Below are positions 4,589 to 13,100 of a stretch of 64,000 bases of DNA, one piece after another (the first letter of the stretch is position 1; every line of letters begins with the position of its first letter). This DNA comes from Podarcis filfolensis (taxonomy: Eukaryota): assembly GCA_964270895.1 (NCBI GenBank), contig OZ185437.1. One strand, given 5' to 3'. The notes under the pieces were generated by a model. That model did no database searches, was not told the DNA's origin, and worked only from the letters and a program-made list of their open reading frames with translations. Position numbers and translations under genes: made by a program.

Positions 4589-4628
4589 GTAGGCACAGAC
4601 AACACTGAGCTGGATTGACTAATGGATT

Positions 4629-5037
4629 TGTGATGGGATGTTGAGCTGCTTGCGCGTAAAGTTCCTAATCCCTCAGTGTTTGGCTAAGTCCACAAACCAC
4701 TGTCTGTAACGGAGCGCCATAAGCATGGCTCCGTCAGTCGCTGGCAGAATCCGACAGTGGGCGTTTACGGAATTTCTTCCAGCATAACAGCTCCTTAACG
4801 GAAACACGTCTTCTGGACTCTCTACGTGACAATTTCCGGCGAGGAGTGGGTGTCCCTAATGGAGGTCCTGAAACCTCCTCGCTGTTCTCGCTGGAATTGT
4901 CTCTGAGCCAATCTTCTGACTCGCCTTCCCTTGGAGCTCTTTCTCGCCCCCTGCTGGTTCCCTCCTCCGCTGATAAGTCTCTCTCAACCTCTGGGAGCCC
5001 CTCCACCACCTGTTCTTCCGATGACAGTTCCCTGACA
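4629..5037 (-). repeat. 3' LTR of the Gypsy element
   Basis: 409-bp copy of 9712-10120, preceded on the minus strand by a polypurine tract. Confidence 0.97.
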
Positions 5038-8000
5038 TCCACCTCCCCTCCAGGGCCCCCTCCACCCCCTCCCCTCCCTTCCTCTGCTGGAGGCGAGGGA
5101 GCAAAACCCCTGAAAGAACTTCCCTCATCTTCCGAAGTCTCGAACATTTTCCTCCACCGGTTGCTGTTTTGGGTTTCTAAGTACTCATCCTCCTCGGAAT
5201 CTATTCCTTCTTCCCACTCTGACCCCGTGAATCCTTCCAATTCCTCCTCCTCGTCGGTGGTGCCAAAGTACTCTCTCCGGAACCTCGCTACTGACTGAGG
5301 TTTCCTGGGGAACCTTTGATGGAACGCTTCGATCAAGACCTCGTCATTGACTTCCTCTGCCGTCACCCAGGTGTTTTCTGAGTCCGGTTCCCCTTCCCAC
5401 GCTACCAAATACTCCACCTGATTACCCTTCCACCTGGAGTCGAGGATTTCCGCCACATGGTTGCTGCTTTCCCTCTCTTCTAAGACAGGTCCCTGTGGGA
5501 AAACATCTTCTTTTCCCCCCCTATACGGTGACAGTAATGACCTGTGGAACACTGGATGCAGTTTCATGTGGTTCGGTAACCGGAGTCTGAAAGCTACGGG
5601 GTTAACCTGTTGAATGACCTCAAATGGTCCCAATCTTTTGGGTCTTAATTTCTTGCAACCCCCCTTGAACGGCAGTCCTTGGGTGGACAGCCACACCTGA
5701 TCCCCCATCCTTATGGTTTCACCTTCCCTTCTGTTCTTGTCTGCCTGCTTCTTATATTGTTCTTTGGCCCTTTCTAAGTTGAGTTGGAGTTGACGATGGA
5801 TCGCTTCCATTTCTTCTACAAAAAGTTCTGCGGCTGGGACGCTCCATCTCTCCCCTCCTCCCCCTGGAAATGCCCTGGGGTGGCACCCATAATTAGCCAA
5901 AAAGGGGCTCATCCCGGTGGACACATTCTCCGCATTATTGTAGGCAAATTCCGCCAGCGCCAACTTTTCCACCCAATCGTTCTCTCTGTCATTGACATAA
6001 CACCTCAGATATTGTTGGAGGATACCGTTTGCTCTTTCCGCCTGCCCGTTGGTTTCTGGGTGCCGGGCAGTCGAAAAATTGACCTCCACGTGCAGTAAGC
6101 TCATGAGCTTCCTCCAGAACCTGGACGTGAATTGTTTGCCCCGGTCTGAGACCACCCTCAAGGGGGCGCCATGCAGTCTAAAAATATGTTCTACAAACAA
6201 TTTAGCTGTCTCTTCCGCCGTGACTGCATGTGAGCAAGCTACAAAGTGGCCCATCTTAGTTAACAGGTCTACTACTACCAGTATGGCGGTTTTCCCCTTG
6301 GATTTCGGCAGATCAGTCATAAAATCTATCGATACCGCCTCCCATGGCCTCTCTGGTGTGGGCAACGGTTCTAACAACCCCGCCGGTGCCCGCCTTTCTC
6401 CCTTGGCTTGCTGGCATTGGTCACACCCTCTTACATACTCCCTTACATCTTCCCTCACTCTGGGCCACCAAAATTCCCTGGTAACCAACCACATGGTTTT
6501 GTGTTGCCCAAAATGCCCTGCTGTAGGGCTGTCGTGCATCTGTTTGAGTACTCTCCCTCTCAATTCCCCTTCGGGTATATATAGTGCCCCTTTGTAATAC
6601 AATGCCCCGTTTCTTTCTTCAAAACCTCCGGAGTTTTCTCCCTCCCTCCTTAGACCTTGGAGCTTATTCTGGGCGTATTCATCATTCTGCGTCTCCTCTA
6701 CCAGTTCCCTTTGCCCCACCAACGCCGCCCCACACACCCAGCGGTCCTCTGGGATGATATGTCTCTCTTCGGGTGCTCCCTCCCCCTCCAAATACTCTGG
6801 TTTGCGTGAGAGAGCGTCCGCCCTGACGTTTTCCGGGCCTGGCACATAGCAAATTTCAAAATAAAATTTGGAGAACTCCTGTGCCCATCTCACTTGCCGT
6901 TGGTTGAGCACTTGTGCCGTTCTCCAGTACTCTAAATTCTTGTGGTCCGTGCATACTTGCACCTTGTGTTGTGCACCAATTAGTAAGTGTCTCCATTTCC
7001 GGAACGCTTCGTGAATGGCGAGTAGTTCTCGGTCATATACCGTGTAGTTCTTCTCGGATTTGTTCAACTTCCGCGAGAGAAAGGCACACGGTCTCCACTC
7101 CGACTTATCCTTCCCCGGCTGAAGAAGCACCGCCCCCACCGCCCGGTCTGATGCGTCAGTTTCCACTCTCATGGGTTTTTGTAAATCCACATGCAGGAGC
7201 TGTTCTTCCGAAGCGAAGGCCTTTTTCAATTCTTCGAATGCTTGCTCCGCTTCTGCCGTCCAAACAAATTTCTTCTTGCTGCTGAGACAGTCCGTGATGG
7301 GAGCCGTTAAATGGGCAAAGTTCTTGATGAACTTCCGATAAAAGTTCCCAAACCCTAAGAATCTTTGCACATCCTTTTTCGTTTTCGGTCTCTTCCATTC
7401 CAGTACTGCCTGGACCTTGCCTGGATCCATGGCTAACCCCTTGTCTGACAAGCGGTACCCCAGGAATTCCACCTCCTTGGTGTGAAACTGACACTTCTCT
7501 AATTTCACCCACAGTTGGTTTGCTTGCAGTCGGCTCAACACTTCTCTGACGTCCTTTACATGCTGCTCCTCATTCTCTGAATAGACTAATACGTCATCTA
7601 GGAAGGCCACACAATTCTTGTAGAGCAGAGGCCCCAGCACGTGGTTCATGAACGATTGAAAACATGCTGAGCCTGCTTGTAATCCAAAGGGCATAACGAG
7701 ATATTCGAAAGCCCCTAGGGGGGTGAACATCGTTGTCTTCCATTCATCCCCCTCCCTTATCCGTATCAGGTTGTATGCCCCCCTTAAGTCCAGTTTAGTG
7801 AAAATTTTTCCCTTCCTCACCCGGGTCAAAATGTCATCAATCCTGGGCATGGGAAAGGCCACTGGTTCCGACACTGCATTTATGCTCCGGAAGTCCACTA
7901 CAAGTCTAGGTTTATTCGTGTTTTTTTTGTCCACAAAAAACACTGGGCTGCCCCCCACCGCTCTGGACTCTCTGATGAAACCTCTCTTCAGGTTTTTGTC

Positions 8001-8714
8001 AATAAACTCCCTCAACTCCTGCATTTCCCTGTCTGACATGGTATACAGCTTGCCCACAGGGAGCTGGGCTCCAGGGACTAGATTGATCTGGCAGTCAAAG
8101 GGTCTATGCGGTGGTAGTTTGTCTGCTTCCCTTTCGCTGAAGACATTGCTCAGGTCAGCGTATTGTTTGGGCACCTTTCCTTTGTCCGTTACTTCTGTTC
8201 CTGCTAGAAAGGCCTTTCCCCCTTCTGGAGCCTTGCCCTCTTTGCAATGTTCTAGGCAATGTGCTGACCCAAAGGAGACCACTCTCTGATGCCAACCCAC
8301 TAGCGGATCATGCAACGCTAGCCAGCTCATCCCCAAAATAATGGGAGCCCCTCCCAAGGTGGCCACATGGAACGCTATTCTTTCGGTGTGCCTGGCTACC
8401 CTCATTACCATTGGGACGGTCTGTAAGCTGACTCCTCCTCCCAACAGCTCTCTCCCATCGATCGTGGTCACCTGCAAGGGGTTGCTTAAAGGGATAGTCT
8501 GTATCTGGTGTTCTGCTGCAAACTCCTTGCTCATAAAATTACAGGAGCTGCCTGAGTCCAATAGCGCCCTTATCTTTAAGGGATGTCCGTTTGGCAGCTC
8601 TAGCAACACCTCTATCACTAGGGCTGGTCTCGGAGGTTCTGGCGTGGGCACTTTTACTGCTCCTTGGCCTGACTGCTGTGCCCTGATGGTGGCAGTCAGG
8701 CGCTGGCTTTTACT
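4734..8714 (-). CDS. pol: Pol (protease, RT, RNase H, integrase, chromodomain, long acidic tail), probably made as a ~1,640-aa Gag-Pol fusion by -1 frameshift
   Basis: DSG protease (8550-8558), RT KLDLRGAY and FLDD (7593-7604), RNase H TDAS/RELLA/TDH/ADALS, integrase HHCC plus D-D35-E, GPF motif, chromodomain. The frame is open from at least 8825 and lies at -1 relative to gag. Confidence 0.96.
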   Translation of the reverse strand, partial: SKSQRLTATIRAQQSGQGAVKVPTPEPPRPALVIEVLLELPNGHPLKIRALLDSGSSCNFMSKEFAAEHQIQTIPLSNPLQVTTIDGRELLGGGVSLQTVPMVMRVARHTERIAFHVATLGGAPIILGMSWLALHDPLVGWHQRVVSFGSAHCLEHCKEGKAPEGGKAFLAGTEVTDKGKVPKQYADLSNVFSEREADKLPPHRPFDCQINLVPGAQLPVGKLYTMSDREMQELREFIDKNLKRGFIRESRAVGGSPVFFVDKKNTNKPRLVVDFRSINAVSEPVAFPMPRIDDILTRVRKGKIFTKLDLRGAYNLIRIREGDEWKTTMFTPLGAFEYLVMPFGLQAGSACFQSFMNHVLGPLLYKNCVAFLDDVLVYSENEEQHVKDVREVLSRLQANQLWVKLEKCQFHTKEVEFLGYRLSDKGLAMDPGKVQAVLEWKRPKTKKDVQRFLGFGNFYRKFIKNFAHLTAPITDCLSSKKKFVWTAEAEQAFEELKKAFASEEQLLHVDLQKPMRVETDASDRAVGAVLLQPGKDKSEWRPCAFLSRKLNKSEKNYTVYDRELLAIHEAFRKWRHLLIGAQHKVQVCTDHKNLEYWRTAQVLNQRQVRWAQEFSKFYFEICYVPGPENVRADALSRKPEYLEGEGAPEERHIIPEDRWVCGAALVGQRELVEETQNDEYAQNKLQGLRREGENSGGFEERNGALYYKGALYIPEGELRGRVLKQMHDSPTAGHFGQHKTMWLVTREFWWPRVREDVREYVRGCDQCQQAKGERRAPAGLLEPLPTPERPWEAVSIDFMTDLPKSKGKTAILVVVDLLTKMGHFVACSHAVTAEETAKLFVEHIFRLHGAPLRVVSDRGKQFTSRFWRKLMSLLHVEVNFSTARHPETNGQAERANGILQQYLRCYVNDRENDWVEKLALAEFAYNNAENVSTGMSPFLANYGCHPRAFPGGGGERWSVPAAELFVEEMEAIHRQLQLNLERAKEQYKKQADKNRREGETIRMGDQVWLSTQGLPFKGGCKKLRPKRLGPFEVIQQVNPVAFRLRLPNHMKLHPVFHRSLLSPYRGGKEDVFPQGPVLEERESSNHVAEILDSRWKGNQVEYLVAWEGEPDSENTWVTAEEVNDEVLIEAFHQRFPRKPQSVARFRREYFGTTDEEEELEGFTGSEWEEGIDSEEDEYLETQNSNRWRKMFETSEDEGSSFRGFAPSPPAEEGRGGGGGGPGGEVDVRELSSEEQVVEGLPEVERDLSAEEGTSRGRERAPREGESEDWLRDNSSENSEEVSGPPLGTPTPRRKLSRRESRRRVSVKELLCWKKFRKRPLSDSASD
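5038..5051 (-). other. Polypurine tract
   Basis: GGAGGGGAGGTGGA immediately 5' of the 3' LTR TG on the minus strand, within a longer G-rich run to ~5078. Confidence 0.9.
5307..5462 (-). other. Chromodomain at the integrase C-terminus
   Basis: NHVAEILDSRWKGNQVEYLVAWEGEPDSENTWVTAEEVNDEVLIEAFHQRFP matches the chromo pattern xVExI...YLVxW.G...ENTW. Confidence 0.9.
8646..8714 (-). promoter_or_regulatory. Gag-pol -1 ribosomal frameshift signal (slip site plus H-type pseudoknot)
   Basis: A_GTA_AAA, 6-nt spacer, 10-bp stem GCCTGACTGC/GCAGTCAGGC, loop GGGCAC pairing with downstream GTGCCC; located at the end of gag. Confidence 0.75.
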
Positions 8715-9667
8715 TGGTCCTGTCCTTCCTCCTCCTTCCCCCCAACAGCTCCTGCCATCCCTTGCCATTCCTTTCTTTGTGGACAGACTCTGGCAAAATG
8801 ACCTGGCTGCTGGCAGAGATAACATTTCTTGGGGCTCTTCCCCTCCTTCTTCCGCCCTTCACTGGGATTTGAAACTGCCCGCGCGCGCGCTGTTCCAACT
8901 TCCATCGGCTCTGCGGGCGGGAAAGCTGGCTCCGGAATCTCTGGAATGCGGAAATCACTCCAACGCTCCCCTTTCCCTTCCCGCTTCTCCAAGGCTCTGG
9001 CCTCCTGACGTGCTCCAATGGTCAGCGCTGATTTGGTCAGCTGGTCCATAGACTCCGCCCTGGGCGCCCGGGAAAGTTCATCTTTCACAGCCGAGGAAAG
9101 TCCCTCTTCGAAAAGCATTTGAATGGGTTCCGCTGACAGATCCCACCCCAATTTGTGTATCAACATAGTAAACTCAGTCCAGTACTCACGGACAGATCGG
9201 CTCCCCTGTTTACAAGCCATCAACTGTCTGCGCACCACTCCCTGTTCAATGTCGCTGGAAAACATCAGGTCCATGGCGCGAAAAAACTTCCGTGCGTCTT
9301 TCAAGACTTCATTATGCCCTGCCATCAGGGGTCTAACCCAGTCTCTCGCCCCTCCTTCGAGATGGCTAATCACAAACGCCACTCGCGATTCCTCATCGGG
9401 AAAGTCATCAAACTGCAGATTAAGAGCATACTGCATCTCTGTCCTAAAGGCTTGATAGTTCCTGGGATCCCCCCCAAACTTCTGCACCAATCCTGGCATC
9501 TTTCTTGCTTGTGGGGGGGCCTTTGCCTTTTCTGCATCCTGAGCCCTCCTCTCATCGAGCCTCGCCGTTTGCAGCGCTAGCTGGACCTCCAACACCCGGT
9601 ACCTTTCTTCGAGGCTTGGACCGGCTCCAGCTCCTCCTGCTTCTCCGGTTCCGGCTGGGTTGCTCAT
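8696..9667 (-). CDS. gag: Gag (capsid plus CCHC nucleocapsid), 323 aa from the first ATG
   Basis: ATG at 9667 (GGCATCATGA); retrotransposon gag-like KFGGDPRNYQAF and QGSRSVREYWTEF; zinc knuckle CYLCQQPGHFARVC; TGA at 8696-8698. Confidence 0.93.
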   Translation of the reverse strand: MSNPAGTGEAGGAGAGPSLEERYRVLEVQLALQTARLDERRAQDAEKAKAPPQARKMPGLVQKFGGDPRNYQAFRTEMQYALNLQFDDFPDEESRVAFVISHLEGGARDWVRPLMAGHNEVLKDARKFFRAMDLMFSSDIEQGVVRRQLMACKQGSRSVREYWTEFTMLIHKLGWDLSAEPIQMLFEEGLSSAVKDELSRAPRAESMDQLTKSALTIGARQEARALEKREGKGERWSDFRIPEIPEPAFPPAEPMEVGTARARAVSNPSEGRKKEGKSPKKCYLCQQPGHFARVCPQRKEWQGMAGAVGGKEEEGQDQVKASA

Positions 9668-9698
9668 GATGCCTTCTCTGCACAAGCTGCTTTCAGGG

Positions 9699-9709
9699 AC
9701 TGTCGGATT
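9699..9709 (-). other. Self-priming primer-binding site
   Basis: AATCCGACAGT starts 2 nt after the 5' LTR, lacks the TGG of tRNA-type PBSs and is exactly complementary to LTR 9831-9841. Confidence 0.8.
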
Positions 9710-9711
9710 GC

Positions 9712-10120
9712 TGTGATGGGATGTTGAGCTGCTTGCGCGTAAAGTTCCTAATCCCTCAGTGTTTGGCTAAGTCCACAAACCACTGTCTGTAACGGAGCGC
9801 CATAAGCATGGCTCCGTCAGTCGCTGGCAGAATCCGACAGTGGGCGTTTACGGAATTTCTTCCAGCATAACAGCTCCTTAACGGAAACACGTCTTCTGGA
9901 CTCTCTACGTGACAATTTCCGGCGAGGAGTGGGTGTCCCTAATGGAGGTCCTGAAACCTCCTCGCTGTTCTCGCTGGAATTGTCTCTGAGCCAATCTTCT
10001 GACTCACCTTCCCTTGGAGCTCTTTCTCGCCCCCTGCTGGTTCCCTCCTCCGCTGATAAGTCTCTCTCAACCTCTGGGAGCCCCTCCACCACCTGTTCTT
10101 CCGATGACAGTTCCCTGACA
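9712..10120 (-). repeat. 5' LTR of the Gypsy element
   Basis: Minus strand TGTCAGGG...CCCATCACA; matches 4629-5037 except at 10006 (A) versus 4923 (G). Confidence 0.97.
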
Positions 10121-13100
10121 GGATTGGACGCAAATGTGGCCGTCTGCTGACAAAAGACTATTTGAGCCAGCAGAGGTTTTCTGTAAGTGGAAAGCAGGAG
10201 GGCAGTTTTCAAGGATTCCCTCTCCCCTCTCCAGCCCCTGTGCCCACCCTGAAATCTGCTCCAGAGGGTTGAGGGGGATAGGAGATACTGTAGGGGGCTG
10301 CAGGAGAAAGGGTGAGTTTGGGGCAATCCAGTGCTATTTTTTCTAGAAAAAGAGGTGCTGGAACTCACCATGAACACCTCTTTCATTCTCTTAGAATGGC
10401 AATGGCGCCCACCTGAAAGGTGTGGGAACTGAGTTCTAGAGAGTTCCAGCTATCTCTGCTCCGCTAGATAAAATAGCCTTCCACCAGTGGACTATAACTC
10501 AGTTACCTGACTCTGCACAAGGCAGCTTCCTCTGTAAAACAAGGGCTGGGAAACAGAAATCTTAATATCAGTTCCTGGGTTGTTTGATTTAAGTAGTGTG
10601 GAGGTTATATGTCAGAATTGCAATATAAAGCTTCTAAGGGGTAGTATCTGTTGGACTGTTGACAATGAGAGGACACCCCAACCTGCCCTGTTCCTTGTTT
10701 CTATGTAGCTGTGAGGACCTTCTGAAAAAAACAGAGGTGGGGAACCATTAAATAGGAGTTGCCGTTTCACAATGAAGAATCTTCTGGCTCTAGACTAACT
10801 CTACCCATCCAGACCAACCACAGAATCCTGTTCCAGCTGAGCTGCACTGTTCCCTGTATTGTTAGGCATTCTTCAGTCTCAACCTCTGGCTTGCTCTTTT
10901 ATCCTGCTGTCAGGTTTGTACAGCTGGCAATTCAGGAACTTTCCTGACTGGCCAGGCCACCAAAAAGGCCAATTTAAATTGGCTAATTGGAGTCCCCAGC
11001 TAGTGGACAGTGCCTCAGTGGCTGGCCAAGTATTGTCATTTCCCGTGCCAGGCCACCCAGAGCGGTGCAGTGGAGAATTGTCAACTACCCATACTCTGTT
11101 CCACGTCACAGCTGAGACCACCTTTGGGATACTTCAGGTGCCCCCGCCATTGTTCCCTTCCAGAGCTGTTCTCCACTTTGTAAAATGACTGTAGTCAGAA
11201 GTGAGGCAAAAGTAAACATGTTATGCTTTTGCTTTTAAGCATATTTGATTTTCTTGCCTGAGTGTGCCAAAGGATAATGTGGAAGTAAAACCGAGGAGTG
11301 CAGAAAACATTACAAATAGGCTGTTTCTTCTTCATGCTGTGAGGTATTGATCTTGCTCTTTTGTTAGTAATTTCTATGACAACAGCTCATCAAGTCAGTC
11401 AAATGTAGAAAAATAATATTTTCACAGGAGATAGGTCCACACAAAGACAAGGCTGTGAAGTGCAGAAAACTCTTTCCTCCTTCTTAAATGGTCTGTTATT
11501 ATTGTATATTGCTATTACTAGCAGTGATATGCTGCTATGAAAGCACAGTGTTTTGTACTGAAAGTTCCCAGCGTATTTCAAGCAAAGTGCACTTCTTTAA
11601 GACCAATTGCTTCAAAATAATTAAATTGACCTTTATCTTTCCATGGTTTGTTTGTTTTTTAAGTCAAATCCAGTAGAATTAAAATTGATCCTCTTGAATT
11701 AGCATGATTTTACACAGGAGTCCCCCCCCAAAAAGACTGCCATCAAATCAAAGTTTACATTTTACTGCATAATATCACAGATCCAGTACTTACCAACACC
11801 ACAGAAACACCAATGCAAAGTGTGTGGATCTTCATGATTTTTGCACAGGACCAAAAGAAAATCCACCAACGAATCACAGAACATATCTCTGGATACAAAG
11901 CTGACCTGTAGTTTGATGATTCTGTGATGGGGATCCCTTATAAAAATTATGGGGATCCATAAGAAACAGTGCCTCAGATCCATGTTTTCGCACCGTGGGA
12001 GCACTGGAAAATACAAGATCTGTGATTTTTTATGGTTCAGTCAATGGAGGCATATGTGAACTGTGATTTGATAGTGGGATTACCAGGTTGGATCAATAAT
12101 AAAAATATTATGCCATTTTGATCTGACTTGTGCATGTGCACATACTCTCCCTGCTTTTCTCCCTCTCCTTCCCCTCCTTCCCACCCAACTTAAAATGCAC
12201 CCCATATTCTTCCTCCTGTCTCCCTCTGGCCACTTTGTTTTTCTCCCCTTCTACCAAGGCCCCCCTTTCCTTCCTACTCATAGAGTTGAAAGAGGAAGTG
12301 GGGGGACGGGATGATGATGACGACACAGCACTCTTCCACCTTCTCCCTTTTATGATGTATTTTGTGTTCTCAATTTGTATTTTTATCTTGTGCTCTTTGG
12401 ATGAAGGGCGGTATACAAATTTCATAAATACTGCTACTGCTACTAATAGCTCTGAGTACCTTTTTCCAGGGAGGGGGGAATGGTACCCAACCTTACCAGC
12501 TGTTGATGACGGGGGCAGTGAATGAAGTGGGAGCCTCAGAGGCTTCACGGGCACCATGGGAAGTCTAGAAGGATGCCATTGTGCCCATGGGCACCATGTT
12601 GGAATCCCCAGTGGATTTCATCAAAGTAATATTTCTATGTTAGCACATTTGCTGTAATCAAACTACCATGCAATCCCTCTTTATATTCTTCAACACATAT
12701 CAAAGGAAAACCACAAGCCCACTTTGTCATGGTTAGCAAACCATCAGCAATAAACTCATCATAGCCATTAAATTCCAGGTTATGACCCCACCAAAGGATT
12801 TTTGAAACATTAGCTGCAAAAATATTTGCATACTTGAACGATTTATCTCGCAGGACACCATGACCACAATATACAGCTTAGAAATTCAGAACATTTTGCT
12901 TAATGTCACCAAAGTTATTGGATCCTGTTTTTATGTGGGGAAAACCAGGATGATGGGTGGGTAGTCTGCAGGAATCCTCTGGTCCTGGGTACTAGTACTG
13001 GCAGAAGCCTGGAACTGTACACAGTGTGTAGAAATAGGTTGGTAGCTATTAAAAAGGTACAGCCATGTCTGATTAGAGTGAGAGAAAGTATGGGGAATGG

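Follow-up and report, generated by a model that had tools for sequence, protein, structure and literature searches.

A squamate Ty3/gypsy chromovirus carrying candidate host-type LEDGF/HRP2-binding motifs in its integrase tail

To our knowledge, the targeting of LTR-retroelement integration is understood for a small number of retroviruses and of elements from yeast, and is essentially unknown for vertebrate Gypsy elements. The question is raised here by a stretch of 64,000 nucleotides from the lizard Podarcis filfolensis (assembly GCA_964270895.1, contig OZ185437.1; hereafter, the window), which contains an intact, young Ty3/gypsy chromovirus of ~5.5 kb on its minus strand. Downstream of its chromodomain, the integrase of this element extends into a long acidic tail with two short motifs that resemble the TND-interacting motifs (TIMs) of host proteins, TND standing for the TFIIS-N-terminal-type domain found in LEDGF/p75 and HRP2 and also in TFIIS, ELOA, IWS1, MED26, and PPP1R10. 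Could this tail dock onto such a domain and thereby guide integration?

The full-length element spans 5,492 bp (4629..10120, minus strand, as are all its parts) and lies between two copies of GGATT, its 5-bp target-site duplication (4624-4628 and 10121-10125). Alignment of the 5' LTR (9712..10120) with the 3' LTR (4629..5037; 409 bp with TG..CA ends) reveals 408 of 409 identical positions and a single mismatch. The gag ORF (8696..9685; 329 aa) contains the Pfam domains Retrotrans_gag, Ty3_capsid, and zf-CCHC. The uninterrupted pol ORF (4734..8825; 1363 aa) encodes a protease (aa 79-186), a reverse transcriptase (aa 299-459), an RNase H (aa 522-654), and an integrase comprising a zinc finger (aa 754-808), the rve domain (aa 825-923), SH3_Tf2-1 (aa 1041-1102), the chromodomain (aa 1124-1171), and the tail (aa 1172-1363). 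This PR-RT-RNaseH-IN order with a C-terminal chromodomain, together with gag, the LTR pair, and the target-site duplication, identifies the element as a Ty3/gypsy chromovirus, and in the integrase tree it clusters with squamate Gypsy elements. The 3' LTR also codes for the last ~100 codons of pol, which ends at 4734. The polypurine tract GGAGGGGAGGTGGA (5038..5051), recognized by its sequence and by the LTR boundary immediately downstream of it, is also translated, falling within the tail's Gly-rich run. Conserved islands at the polypurine tract and LTR start reflect constraint at the nucleotide level. Flanking ORFs of at least 150 aa had no Pfam match, and the surroundings of this copy gave no information on its insertion context.

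The chromodomain itself (5313..5456; Pfam E 4.7e-11) is predicted with confidence by AF2 (pLDDT ~90). Aligned to HP1 (1KNA) and CBX3, it keeps one of the three aromatic-cage positions of HP1 (Y24, W45, and Y48 in 1KNA): W45 is kept, while Y24 is replaced by N and Y48 by E. It thus departs from the canonical three-residue methyl-lysine cage, which is not required for membership of the clade. Chromodomain-targeted elements such as MAGGY and those of the Tf1 type belong to the same element class and carry a chromodomain in the same C-terminal region of integrase, but the window chromodomain lacks two of the three cage residues. With such a degenerate cage, it may no longer target integration by itself.

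In the intact pol, the two motifs start 10 and 52 residues past the chromodomain. Motif A (aa 1181-1199, RFRREYFGTTDEEEELEGF; 5229..5285) consists of FRREYF, predicted to form a short helix and anchored by F1187, an 8-residue linker, GTTDEEEE, and LEGF. Motif B (aa 1223-1241, RWRKMFETSEDEGSSFRGF; 5103..5159) opens with RWRKMF, the start of its predicted helix, anchored by F1228, followed by the 9-residue linker ETSEDEGSS and FRGF (aa 1238-1241). Between them lies an acidic, fast-evolving, and indel-prone spacer (aa 1200-1222; 5160..5228). Predicted CK2-type S/T-x-x-D/E sites are present at T1189 and T1190 in motif A and at T1230 and S1231 in motif B. The sequence-only reading had described two mutually alignable motifs in the integrase tail, which the pol translation bears out together with an alignment of A to B that contains one gap; its limits for motif B were exact, whereas the upper limit given for motif A (5229-5279) was 6 nt too low.

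The AF2 model of the tail has pLDDT values below 50, as for a disordered region. Two helices predicted at low confidence (aa 1182-1187 and 1222-1225) correspond to the N-terminal half of motif A and that of motif B, respectively; the sole other one (aa 1343-1350) falls in the LTR-encoded end. TIMs and LEDGF IBD-binding motifs (IBMs) are characterized by disorder, a short helix with an F/V/L/I anchor, an acidic, Gly/Ser/Thr-rich linker of 8 to 16 residues, often CK2 sites, and FxGF, the last being needed by all known partners of LEDGF/HRP2 (PMC9987994). The TIM-like build that had been claimed for the tail therefore holds for its disorder, its acidic linkers, and the FxGF of motif B, and at low confidence for the helices. 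Motif A departs from it in the window copy, ending in LxGF; the relatives P0121, P0129, and P0312 show FVGF or FEGF at this place. Cellular FxGF-class motifs (JPO2/CDCA7L M1, IWS1, MLL1, POGZ, MED1, and ASK, as well as Drosophila JIL-1 with JASPer) share with the window tail the disorder, the anchor Phe, an acidic Ser/Thr linker, and the CK2-type sites, and they have the short helix that is predicted at low confidence in the window tail. The spacing from anchor to FxGF is 8 to 9 residues in motifs A and B and 8 in JPO2 M1, and JPO2 likewise bears more than one motif per protein. Unlike the cellular TIMs, the window motifs are known from sequence and sit on a retrotransposon integrase rather than on a host transcription factor. 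Readings of the helices as RVxF (PP1), SIM, or FFAT motifs do not match the invariant positions.

The FxGF motif recurs across three or more Gypsy lineages of squamates whose flanking sequences are unrelated. In a sister Podarcis family, it occupies the exact register past the chromodomain despite wholly different intervening residues, and among 13 copies only x varies; the linker there is Ser/Thr-rich, not acidic, and the helix reads DFFDDWLF. The deepest relative (P0122) retains motif B alone, amid flanks that cannot be aligned. At the class Phe position of motif A, where the window copy has Leu, P0002 has Met, and in a single Podarcis copy (P0311) this motif reads FEEF. A distant Gypsy lineage of Anolis (P0117) carries KRLRDIFAAPSDEESFEGFT / RDIFAAPSDEESFEGF. 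Examination of the tails and the integrase tree revealed that the motif is absent from sister lineages of the same clade (P0012/14, P0015, and P0016); therefore, it is not essential to transposition. Fish, amphibian, and fungal chromovirus relatives have basic tails of 5 to 30 residues, with no long acidic FxGF tail like that of the window element. As judged from these sequences, the motif is limited to part of one squamate clade and is not a general chromovirus feature.

Motifs A and B are real conserved short linear motifs under purifying selection at the protein level. When the tail was shuffled 50,000 times with its composition kept, at least one motif arose at a rate of 0.014 and at least two at 6e-5. 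Matches to the pattern numbered 2 across the 137,520 residues that made up the pol bodies and 15 across the 7,271 that made up the tails; this pattern was defined post hoc, after the data had been seen, and the rates and counts are indicative only. In relatives down to 33% tail identity, the anchor Phe and [F/L]xGF persist although their codons change synonymously, and the flanks diverge, which is the outcome that the sequence-only reading had proposed to look for. Indeed, of the motif B codons compared between the window and one relative (L001), 2 are identical, 9 differ synonymously, and 8 differ non-synonymously; the anchor F as well as both F residues and the G of FxGF are among the positions with synonymous differences. 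Since synonymous sites are saturated, dN/dS was mostly not computable, and pN was compared in its place: values of 0.17 and 0.23 for the motifs compare with 0.43 for the spacer, and pN is, between the window and L002, 0.32 in motif B, 0.57 in the spacer, and 0.36 in the chromodomain. The anchor Phe is invariant in every motif copy, and all 10 of the motifs that were aligned keep the G and the final F. Among the 40 best-supported variant sites in contigs of four organisms, 8 fall in the spacer, which also has an 8-aa indel in P0003; motif A has 1 synonymous change, and motif B has 1 K-to-E change, at a non-anchor site. Given the rarity of two motifs in the shuffles and the anchors kept through synonymous changes amid diverging flanks, the motifs are unlikely to be a product of chance.

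Comparison with known structures points toward LEDGF by way of a relative. A mixed profile of 11 squamate retroelement motifs, run against 177,635 PDB sequences, had as its top match 6emo_A, aligned on the IBM (E 0.25), and the Anolis peptide retrieved the same chain first with phmmer (12/20 identical, ungapped, E 0.13); E-values of 0.13 to 0.25 are not significant by themselves. The chain in 6EMO is the LEDGF/p75 IBD fused to JPO2 motif 1 (M1, or IBM1). Profiles restricted to lacertid motifs (A5 and A7) retrieved no IBM chain from the PDB, giving spurious matches (CylK and ARL2) or none, so that the JPO2 link is not valid for the window's family by its sequence alone. Similarly, phmmer with the 91-aa tail found only Gly-run artefacts in the PDB, and an ESM Atlas feature search with the tail was uninformative (best score, 0.77). 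The link to JPO2 is thus one of the Anolis relative, and the window's family matches the class by its pattern, not by significant sequence similarity; in this respect, the lacertid motifs differ from the cellular TIMs. Binding of FxGF by a LEDGF domain has been conserved out to Drosophila, in the pair JIL-1/JASPer (10.1101/624023).

The motif is probably a mimic of host TIMs and a variant of integrase-tail tethering. That the integrase tail docks a host TND via its tandem motifs and so tethers integration to H3K36-methylated gene-body chromatin is a proposal that we hold to be evenly poised. The disordered acidic tail would dock onto the well-characterized TND of either LEDGF/p75 or HRP2, phosphorylation of the tail probably tightening the contact. 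As LEDGF/p75 and HRP2 read H3K36 methylation on transcribed gene bodies, the integrase-cDNA complex would be held on chromatin carrying this mark, with avidity gained from the two motifs of each integrase and from the several integrases of an intasome. HIV-1 and other lentiviruses reach the outcome proposed here, an integrase tethered to transcription units marked by H3K36me, via that very domain of LEDGF. Lentiviral integrase engages LEDGF through the structured dimer interface of its catalytic core, unlike an unstructured IBM (PMC10854676). The lizard route, in contrast, would use an unstructured, host-like C-terminal peptide and would be convergent.

The broader evolutionary reading is tentative, and we place it just short of even: a squamate Ty3/gypsy clade may have evolved host-type LEDGF/HRP2-binding motifs in its integrase tail, the Anolis lineage possibly having captured its motif from CDCA7L/JPO2. 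This would constitute a phospho-regulated, non-lentiviral tether and the first retrotransposon mimic of the TND-TIM code of Pol II elongation. Our literature search found no published description of such motifs in Ty3/Gypsy integrase tails. If binding to LEDGF/HRP2 is true, a retrotransposon and the lentiviruses converged on one chromatin tether via entirely different interfaces, and the TND-TIM interaction code is exploited by selfish elements. Moreover, related Gypsy families that bear or lack the motif side by side in lizard genomes would then offer a natural series relating the peptide to the insertion landscape.

The conservation described above indicates selection and not the identity of the partner, and these functional motifs could instead contact histones, in the manner of acidic-aromatic histone-binding motifs, an acceptor for acidic activation domains of the Mediator/TFIIH type, or the element's own basic regions, the last as an intramolecular regulator. 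The tail is broadly acidic with scattered aromatics, the sister-family helix DFFDDWLF resembles an acidic activation segment, and the lacertid-only profiles miss the IBM chains. However, the invariant positions (the anchor F, then F/L-x-G-F after 8 to 9 residues, with x free) define exactly the FxGF class, and generic acidic-aromatic motifs need neither a fixed Gly nor a fixed spacing. The Anolis version, furthermore, shares 12/20 residues with JPO2 M1, whose structure was determined together with the LEDGF IBD. We consider a partner outside the TND family unlikely, while giving it real weight.

Docking onto a TND could also benefit the element in a way other than the choice of integration site, through integrase stabilization or nuclear retention or through recruitment of the elongation machinery to the element. 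LEDGF shields HIV-1 integrase against degradation, and integrase C-terminal peptides steer integration in MLV (with the ET domain of BET proteins), Ty5 (with Sir4), and Ty1 (with AC40). The motifs of the window element lie at this same end of integrase, which favors tethering, although our data do not separate the two functions. Compared with these three systems, the motif class and the presumed partner are different, and the window motif is tandem and downstream of the chromodomain. Host TIMs, for their part, serve the assembly of the transcription elongation machinery (PMC9987994). A benefit confined to functions other than targeting seems to us improbable.

Returning to the tethering proposal, its premise that the motifs function at all is challenged very weakly by a reading of them as chance FxGF strings in a compositionally biased, acidic low-complexity tail, conserved through shared ancestry or through nucleotide constraint from the polypurine tract and LTR start or from an antisense ORF, a reading that the shuffles, codon comparison, and pN largely refute and that sits poorly with anchors persisting at saturated synonymous sites and with motifs in three lineages with unrelated flanks. 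This antisense ORF (4846-5298) is open across the motif region. We rejected it as coding: it is of low complexity, rich in Ser, Leu, and Pro, its frame is broken in L001, and GAR-rich codons are expected to give such a mirror.

The integrase tail of the element carries two short peptides after the chromodomain, read here from the pol translation: motif A (RFRREYFGTTDEEEELEGF; aa 1181-1199, nt 5229-5285, minus strand) and motif B (RWRKMFETSEDEGSSFRGF; aa 1223-1241, nt 5103-5159, minus strand). Both had been claimed for this part of the pol frame by the sequence-only reading, whose coordinates hold for motif B and fall 6 nt short at the upper bound of motif A. The tail comprises 192 residues, includes a translated polypurine tract (5038-5051, minus strand), and has its final ~100 codons inside the 3' LTR. 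In an AlphaFold2 model of the chromodomain and tail, pLDDT is ~90 in the chromodomain and below 50 in the tail, which is predicted to be disordered; at this confidence, tail helices are predicted only at aa 1182-1187, 1222-1225, and 1343-1350, the first two being the N-terminal halves of motifs A and B.

The element itself (4629-10120, minus strand) is a complete LTR retrotransposon of 5,492 bp. We consider it a young, apparently intact Ty3/gypsy chromovirus, because its 409-bp LTRs (4629-5037 and 9712-10120, minus strand, each with a TG start and a CA end) differ by a single mismatch (408/409 identical), a perfect 5-bp target-site duplication (GGATT) surrounds it, gag (8696-9685, minus strand, 329 aa) and pol (4734-8825, minus strand, 1363 aa) are uninterrupted, and pol shows the Pfam order protease, RT, RNase H, integrase zinc finger, rve core, SH3_Tf2-1, and chromodomain (aa 1124-1171, 5313-5456, minus strand, E 4.7e-11). 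It looks potentially autonomous. The 64-kb window has no further copy, and nothing informative emerges from the sequence around this insertion. Contigs from at least four organisms show the family to be highly repeated; one sequencing run, guessed to be RNA, provided contigs ~85-88% identical over 5034-5738. The nearest database proteins are Podarcis muralis entries named "Gypsy retrotransposon integrase-like". Another P. muralis protein (P0004, NCBI "vomeronasal type-2 receptor 26-like") couples a stretch of Gypsy integrase, with 81% identity to the window element, to a V2R receptor body; the probable cause is chimeric annotation or exonisation of an insertion.

The TND-interacting motifs (TIMs; TND, TFIIS N-terminal domain) consist of a short helix with F/V/L/I as its anchor, an acidic, Gly/Ser/Thr-rich, CK2-phosphorylated linker of 8 to 16 residues, and an FxGF element found in every known LEDGF/HRP2 partner (PMC9987994). 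As had been proposed, each sequence-level feature of this class is present in the window motifs, the helix as a low-confidence prediction, with linkers of 8 and 9 residues and S/T-x-x-D/E sites at T1189, T1190, T1230, and S1231. When 177,635 distinct PDB sequences were searched with a profile built on 11 retroelement motifs, drawn from all three lineages, the best match was 6emo_A (E 0.25), and the peptide of an Anolis family, P0117, used alone, again had 6emo_A on top (E 0.13); such E-values (0.13-0.25) are not significant alone, and the weight of the match lies in its top rank on one of the PDB's few chains bearing a LEDGF integrase-binding-type motif (IBM). In this chain, JPO2 motif 1 is joined to the LEDGF/p75 IBD, and the profile aligns exactly on DIFNAPSDD-EEFVGFRD. 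The P0117 peptide (KRLRDIFAAPSDEESFEGFT, residues ~976-995) is identical to human JPO2/CDCA7L IBM1 (KEVADIFNAPSDDEEFVGFR) at 12 of 20 ungapped positions, and its capture from the host CDCA7L gene, instead of convergence, is a possibility. Since lacertid-only motif profiles retrieved no IBM chains from the PDB, the likeness of the window family resides in architecture and invariant positions, not in measurable sequence similarity.

The motif recurs in other lineages. In the integrase tree, the element family falls within a squamate clade (SH-aLRT 94), where its sister group (99) is P0006-P0011, another family from Podarcis. This second family has PMPADFFDDWLFTPTLSASTF[H/Q/R]GF after the chromodomain in an identical register: with numbering from a conserved KP.P, both families place the anchor Phe at +12, F/L at +21, G at +23, and the last F at +24, and they share none of the residues in between. 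Among 13 copies of this second family, variation is limited to the x of FxGF. The Anolis family (75 members, without a chromodomain), whose peptide likewise sits in the tail, lies at the base of the clade. The expectation that related chromoviruses share the motif is thus borne out for squamate lineages, though not all of them (P0012/14, P0015, and P0016, of the same clade, have acidic tails without it), and fails for amphibians and fish. Because of this patchiness, and because chromovirus tails of amphibian, fish, fungal, or metagenomic origin are short and basic, the motif is, judging from these tails, a squamate innovation with multiple gains or repeated loss. A conserved acidic-aromatic motif with a partner other than a TND is a less probable reading, though one to be taken seriously, and would leave the invariant Gly and the fixed spacing unexplained. 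The P0006-P0011 tails (150-400 residues) also keep a Trp-rich block, SYWWDDRPEEQWRRKWL, beside the FxGF motif, and its WRRKW is similar to the RWRKMF with which motif B begins.

We propose LEDGF or HRP2, through its IBD/TND, or else another TND, as the partner that the tail would bind; this docking would tether the integrase-cDNA complex to transcribed, H3K36-methylated chromatin and so affect integration. Affinity would rise with linker phosphorylation, and avidity would come from having tandem motifs in a multimeric integrase. Since conservation of FxGF binding by LEDGF domains reaches to Drosophila JIL-1/JASPer (10.1101/624023), a lizard partner may be expected. TND binding that serves a purpose other than targeting seems unlikely, and on present data it is inseparable from tethering. 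The window chromodomain aligns well to HP1 (1KNA) and CBX3 and keeps one of three aromatics at what we take to be the HP1 cage positions, the other two being Asn and Glu; in the sister family, the cage Trp position is occupied by Lys. Both chromodomains may read methyl-lysine non-canonically or not at all, and a degraded cage fits with targeting having moved to another module. Ty1, Ty5, and MLV provide known examples of tethering by integrase C-terminal peptides. In agreement with the earlier claim of no prior description in Ty3/Gypsy, no retrotransposon with an IBM or TIM is described in the full-text literature searched, which covers a minority of subscription journals; mimicry of host TIMs by a Gypsy integrase, if true, would be a new form of such tethering.

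Selection on the motifs is evident within the family. Both are retained in P0001-3 (tail identity 66-85%), where the spacer between them is variable with an 8-residue indel. An exhaustive representative search added P0121 (66% identity), with both motifs and motif A reading FVGF, and P0129, with motif A again as FVGF. Two further Podarcis copies keep motif B intact; motif A is intact in P0312 and has FEEF in P0311. The predicted retention of anchors amid diverging flanks was seen down to P0122 (33% tail identity), in which motif B alone is left (QWKTVFESDENEDTDFLGF) between unalignable flanks. Among the 40 best-supported variant sites in contigs of four organisms, 8 fall in the 69-nt spacer, one in motif A (synonymous), and one in motif B (K1226E, at a non-anchor position). 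In motif B, comparison with the related sequence L001 finds 9 codons that differ synonymously, 8 that differ non-synonymously, and 2 that are identical; the anchor Phe and all three fixed positions of FxGF are among those with synonymous differences, so the constraint acts on protein, not nucleotides. As synonymous sites are saturated, pN was compared: against L001 it is 0.17 and 0.23 in the motifs versus 0.43 in the spacer, and against L002 motif B (0.32) lies below the spacer (0.57) and near the chromodomain (0.36).

To gauge chance, we used a pattern in which [F/L/M]xGF follows a hydrophobic anchor by 8-12 residues and has at least 6 D/E/S/T in the preceding 12 residues. In composition-preserving tail shuffles it arose at least once at a rate of 0.014, and at least twice at 6e-5, and in 120 related pol proteins it matched twice in 137,520 body residues versus 15 times in 7,271 tail residues. 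As the pattern was set post hoc on data already seen, these figures lend support but do not amount to a formal test. Chance or nucleotide-level constraint is thus very improbable, given the rarity of paired motifs in shuffles, the synonymous anchor codons, and the low motif pN, and an antisense ORF over the tail (4846-5298, plus strand, 150 aa) is judged an artefact, a Ser/Leu/Pro low-complexity mirror of GAR-rich codons that is broken in L001.

The LTR-encoded end of pol (4734-5037, minus strand) has a basic RRKLSRRESRRR stretch, a predicted helix across VKELLCWK, and a PLSDS terminus. It persists in P0121 and partly (LLCWKR) in P0122, 33% identical. Its pN of 0.30 and pS of 0.74 against L001 suggest genuine coding constraint or an overlapping LTR function.
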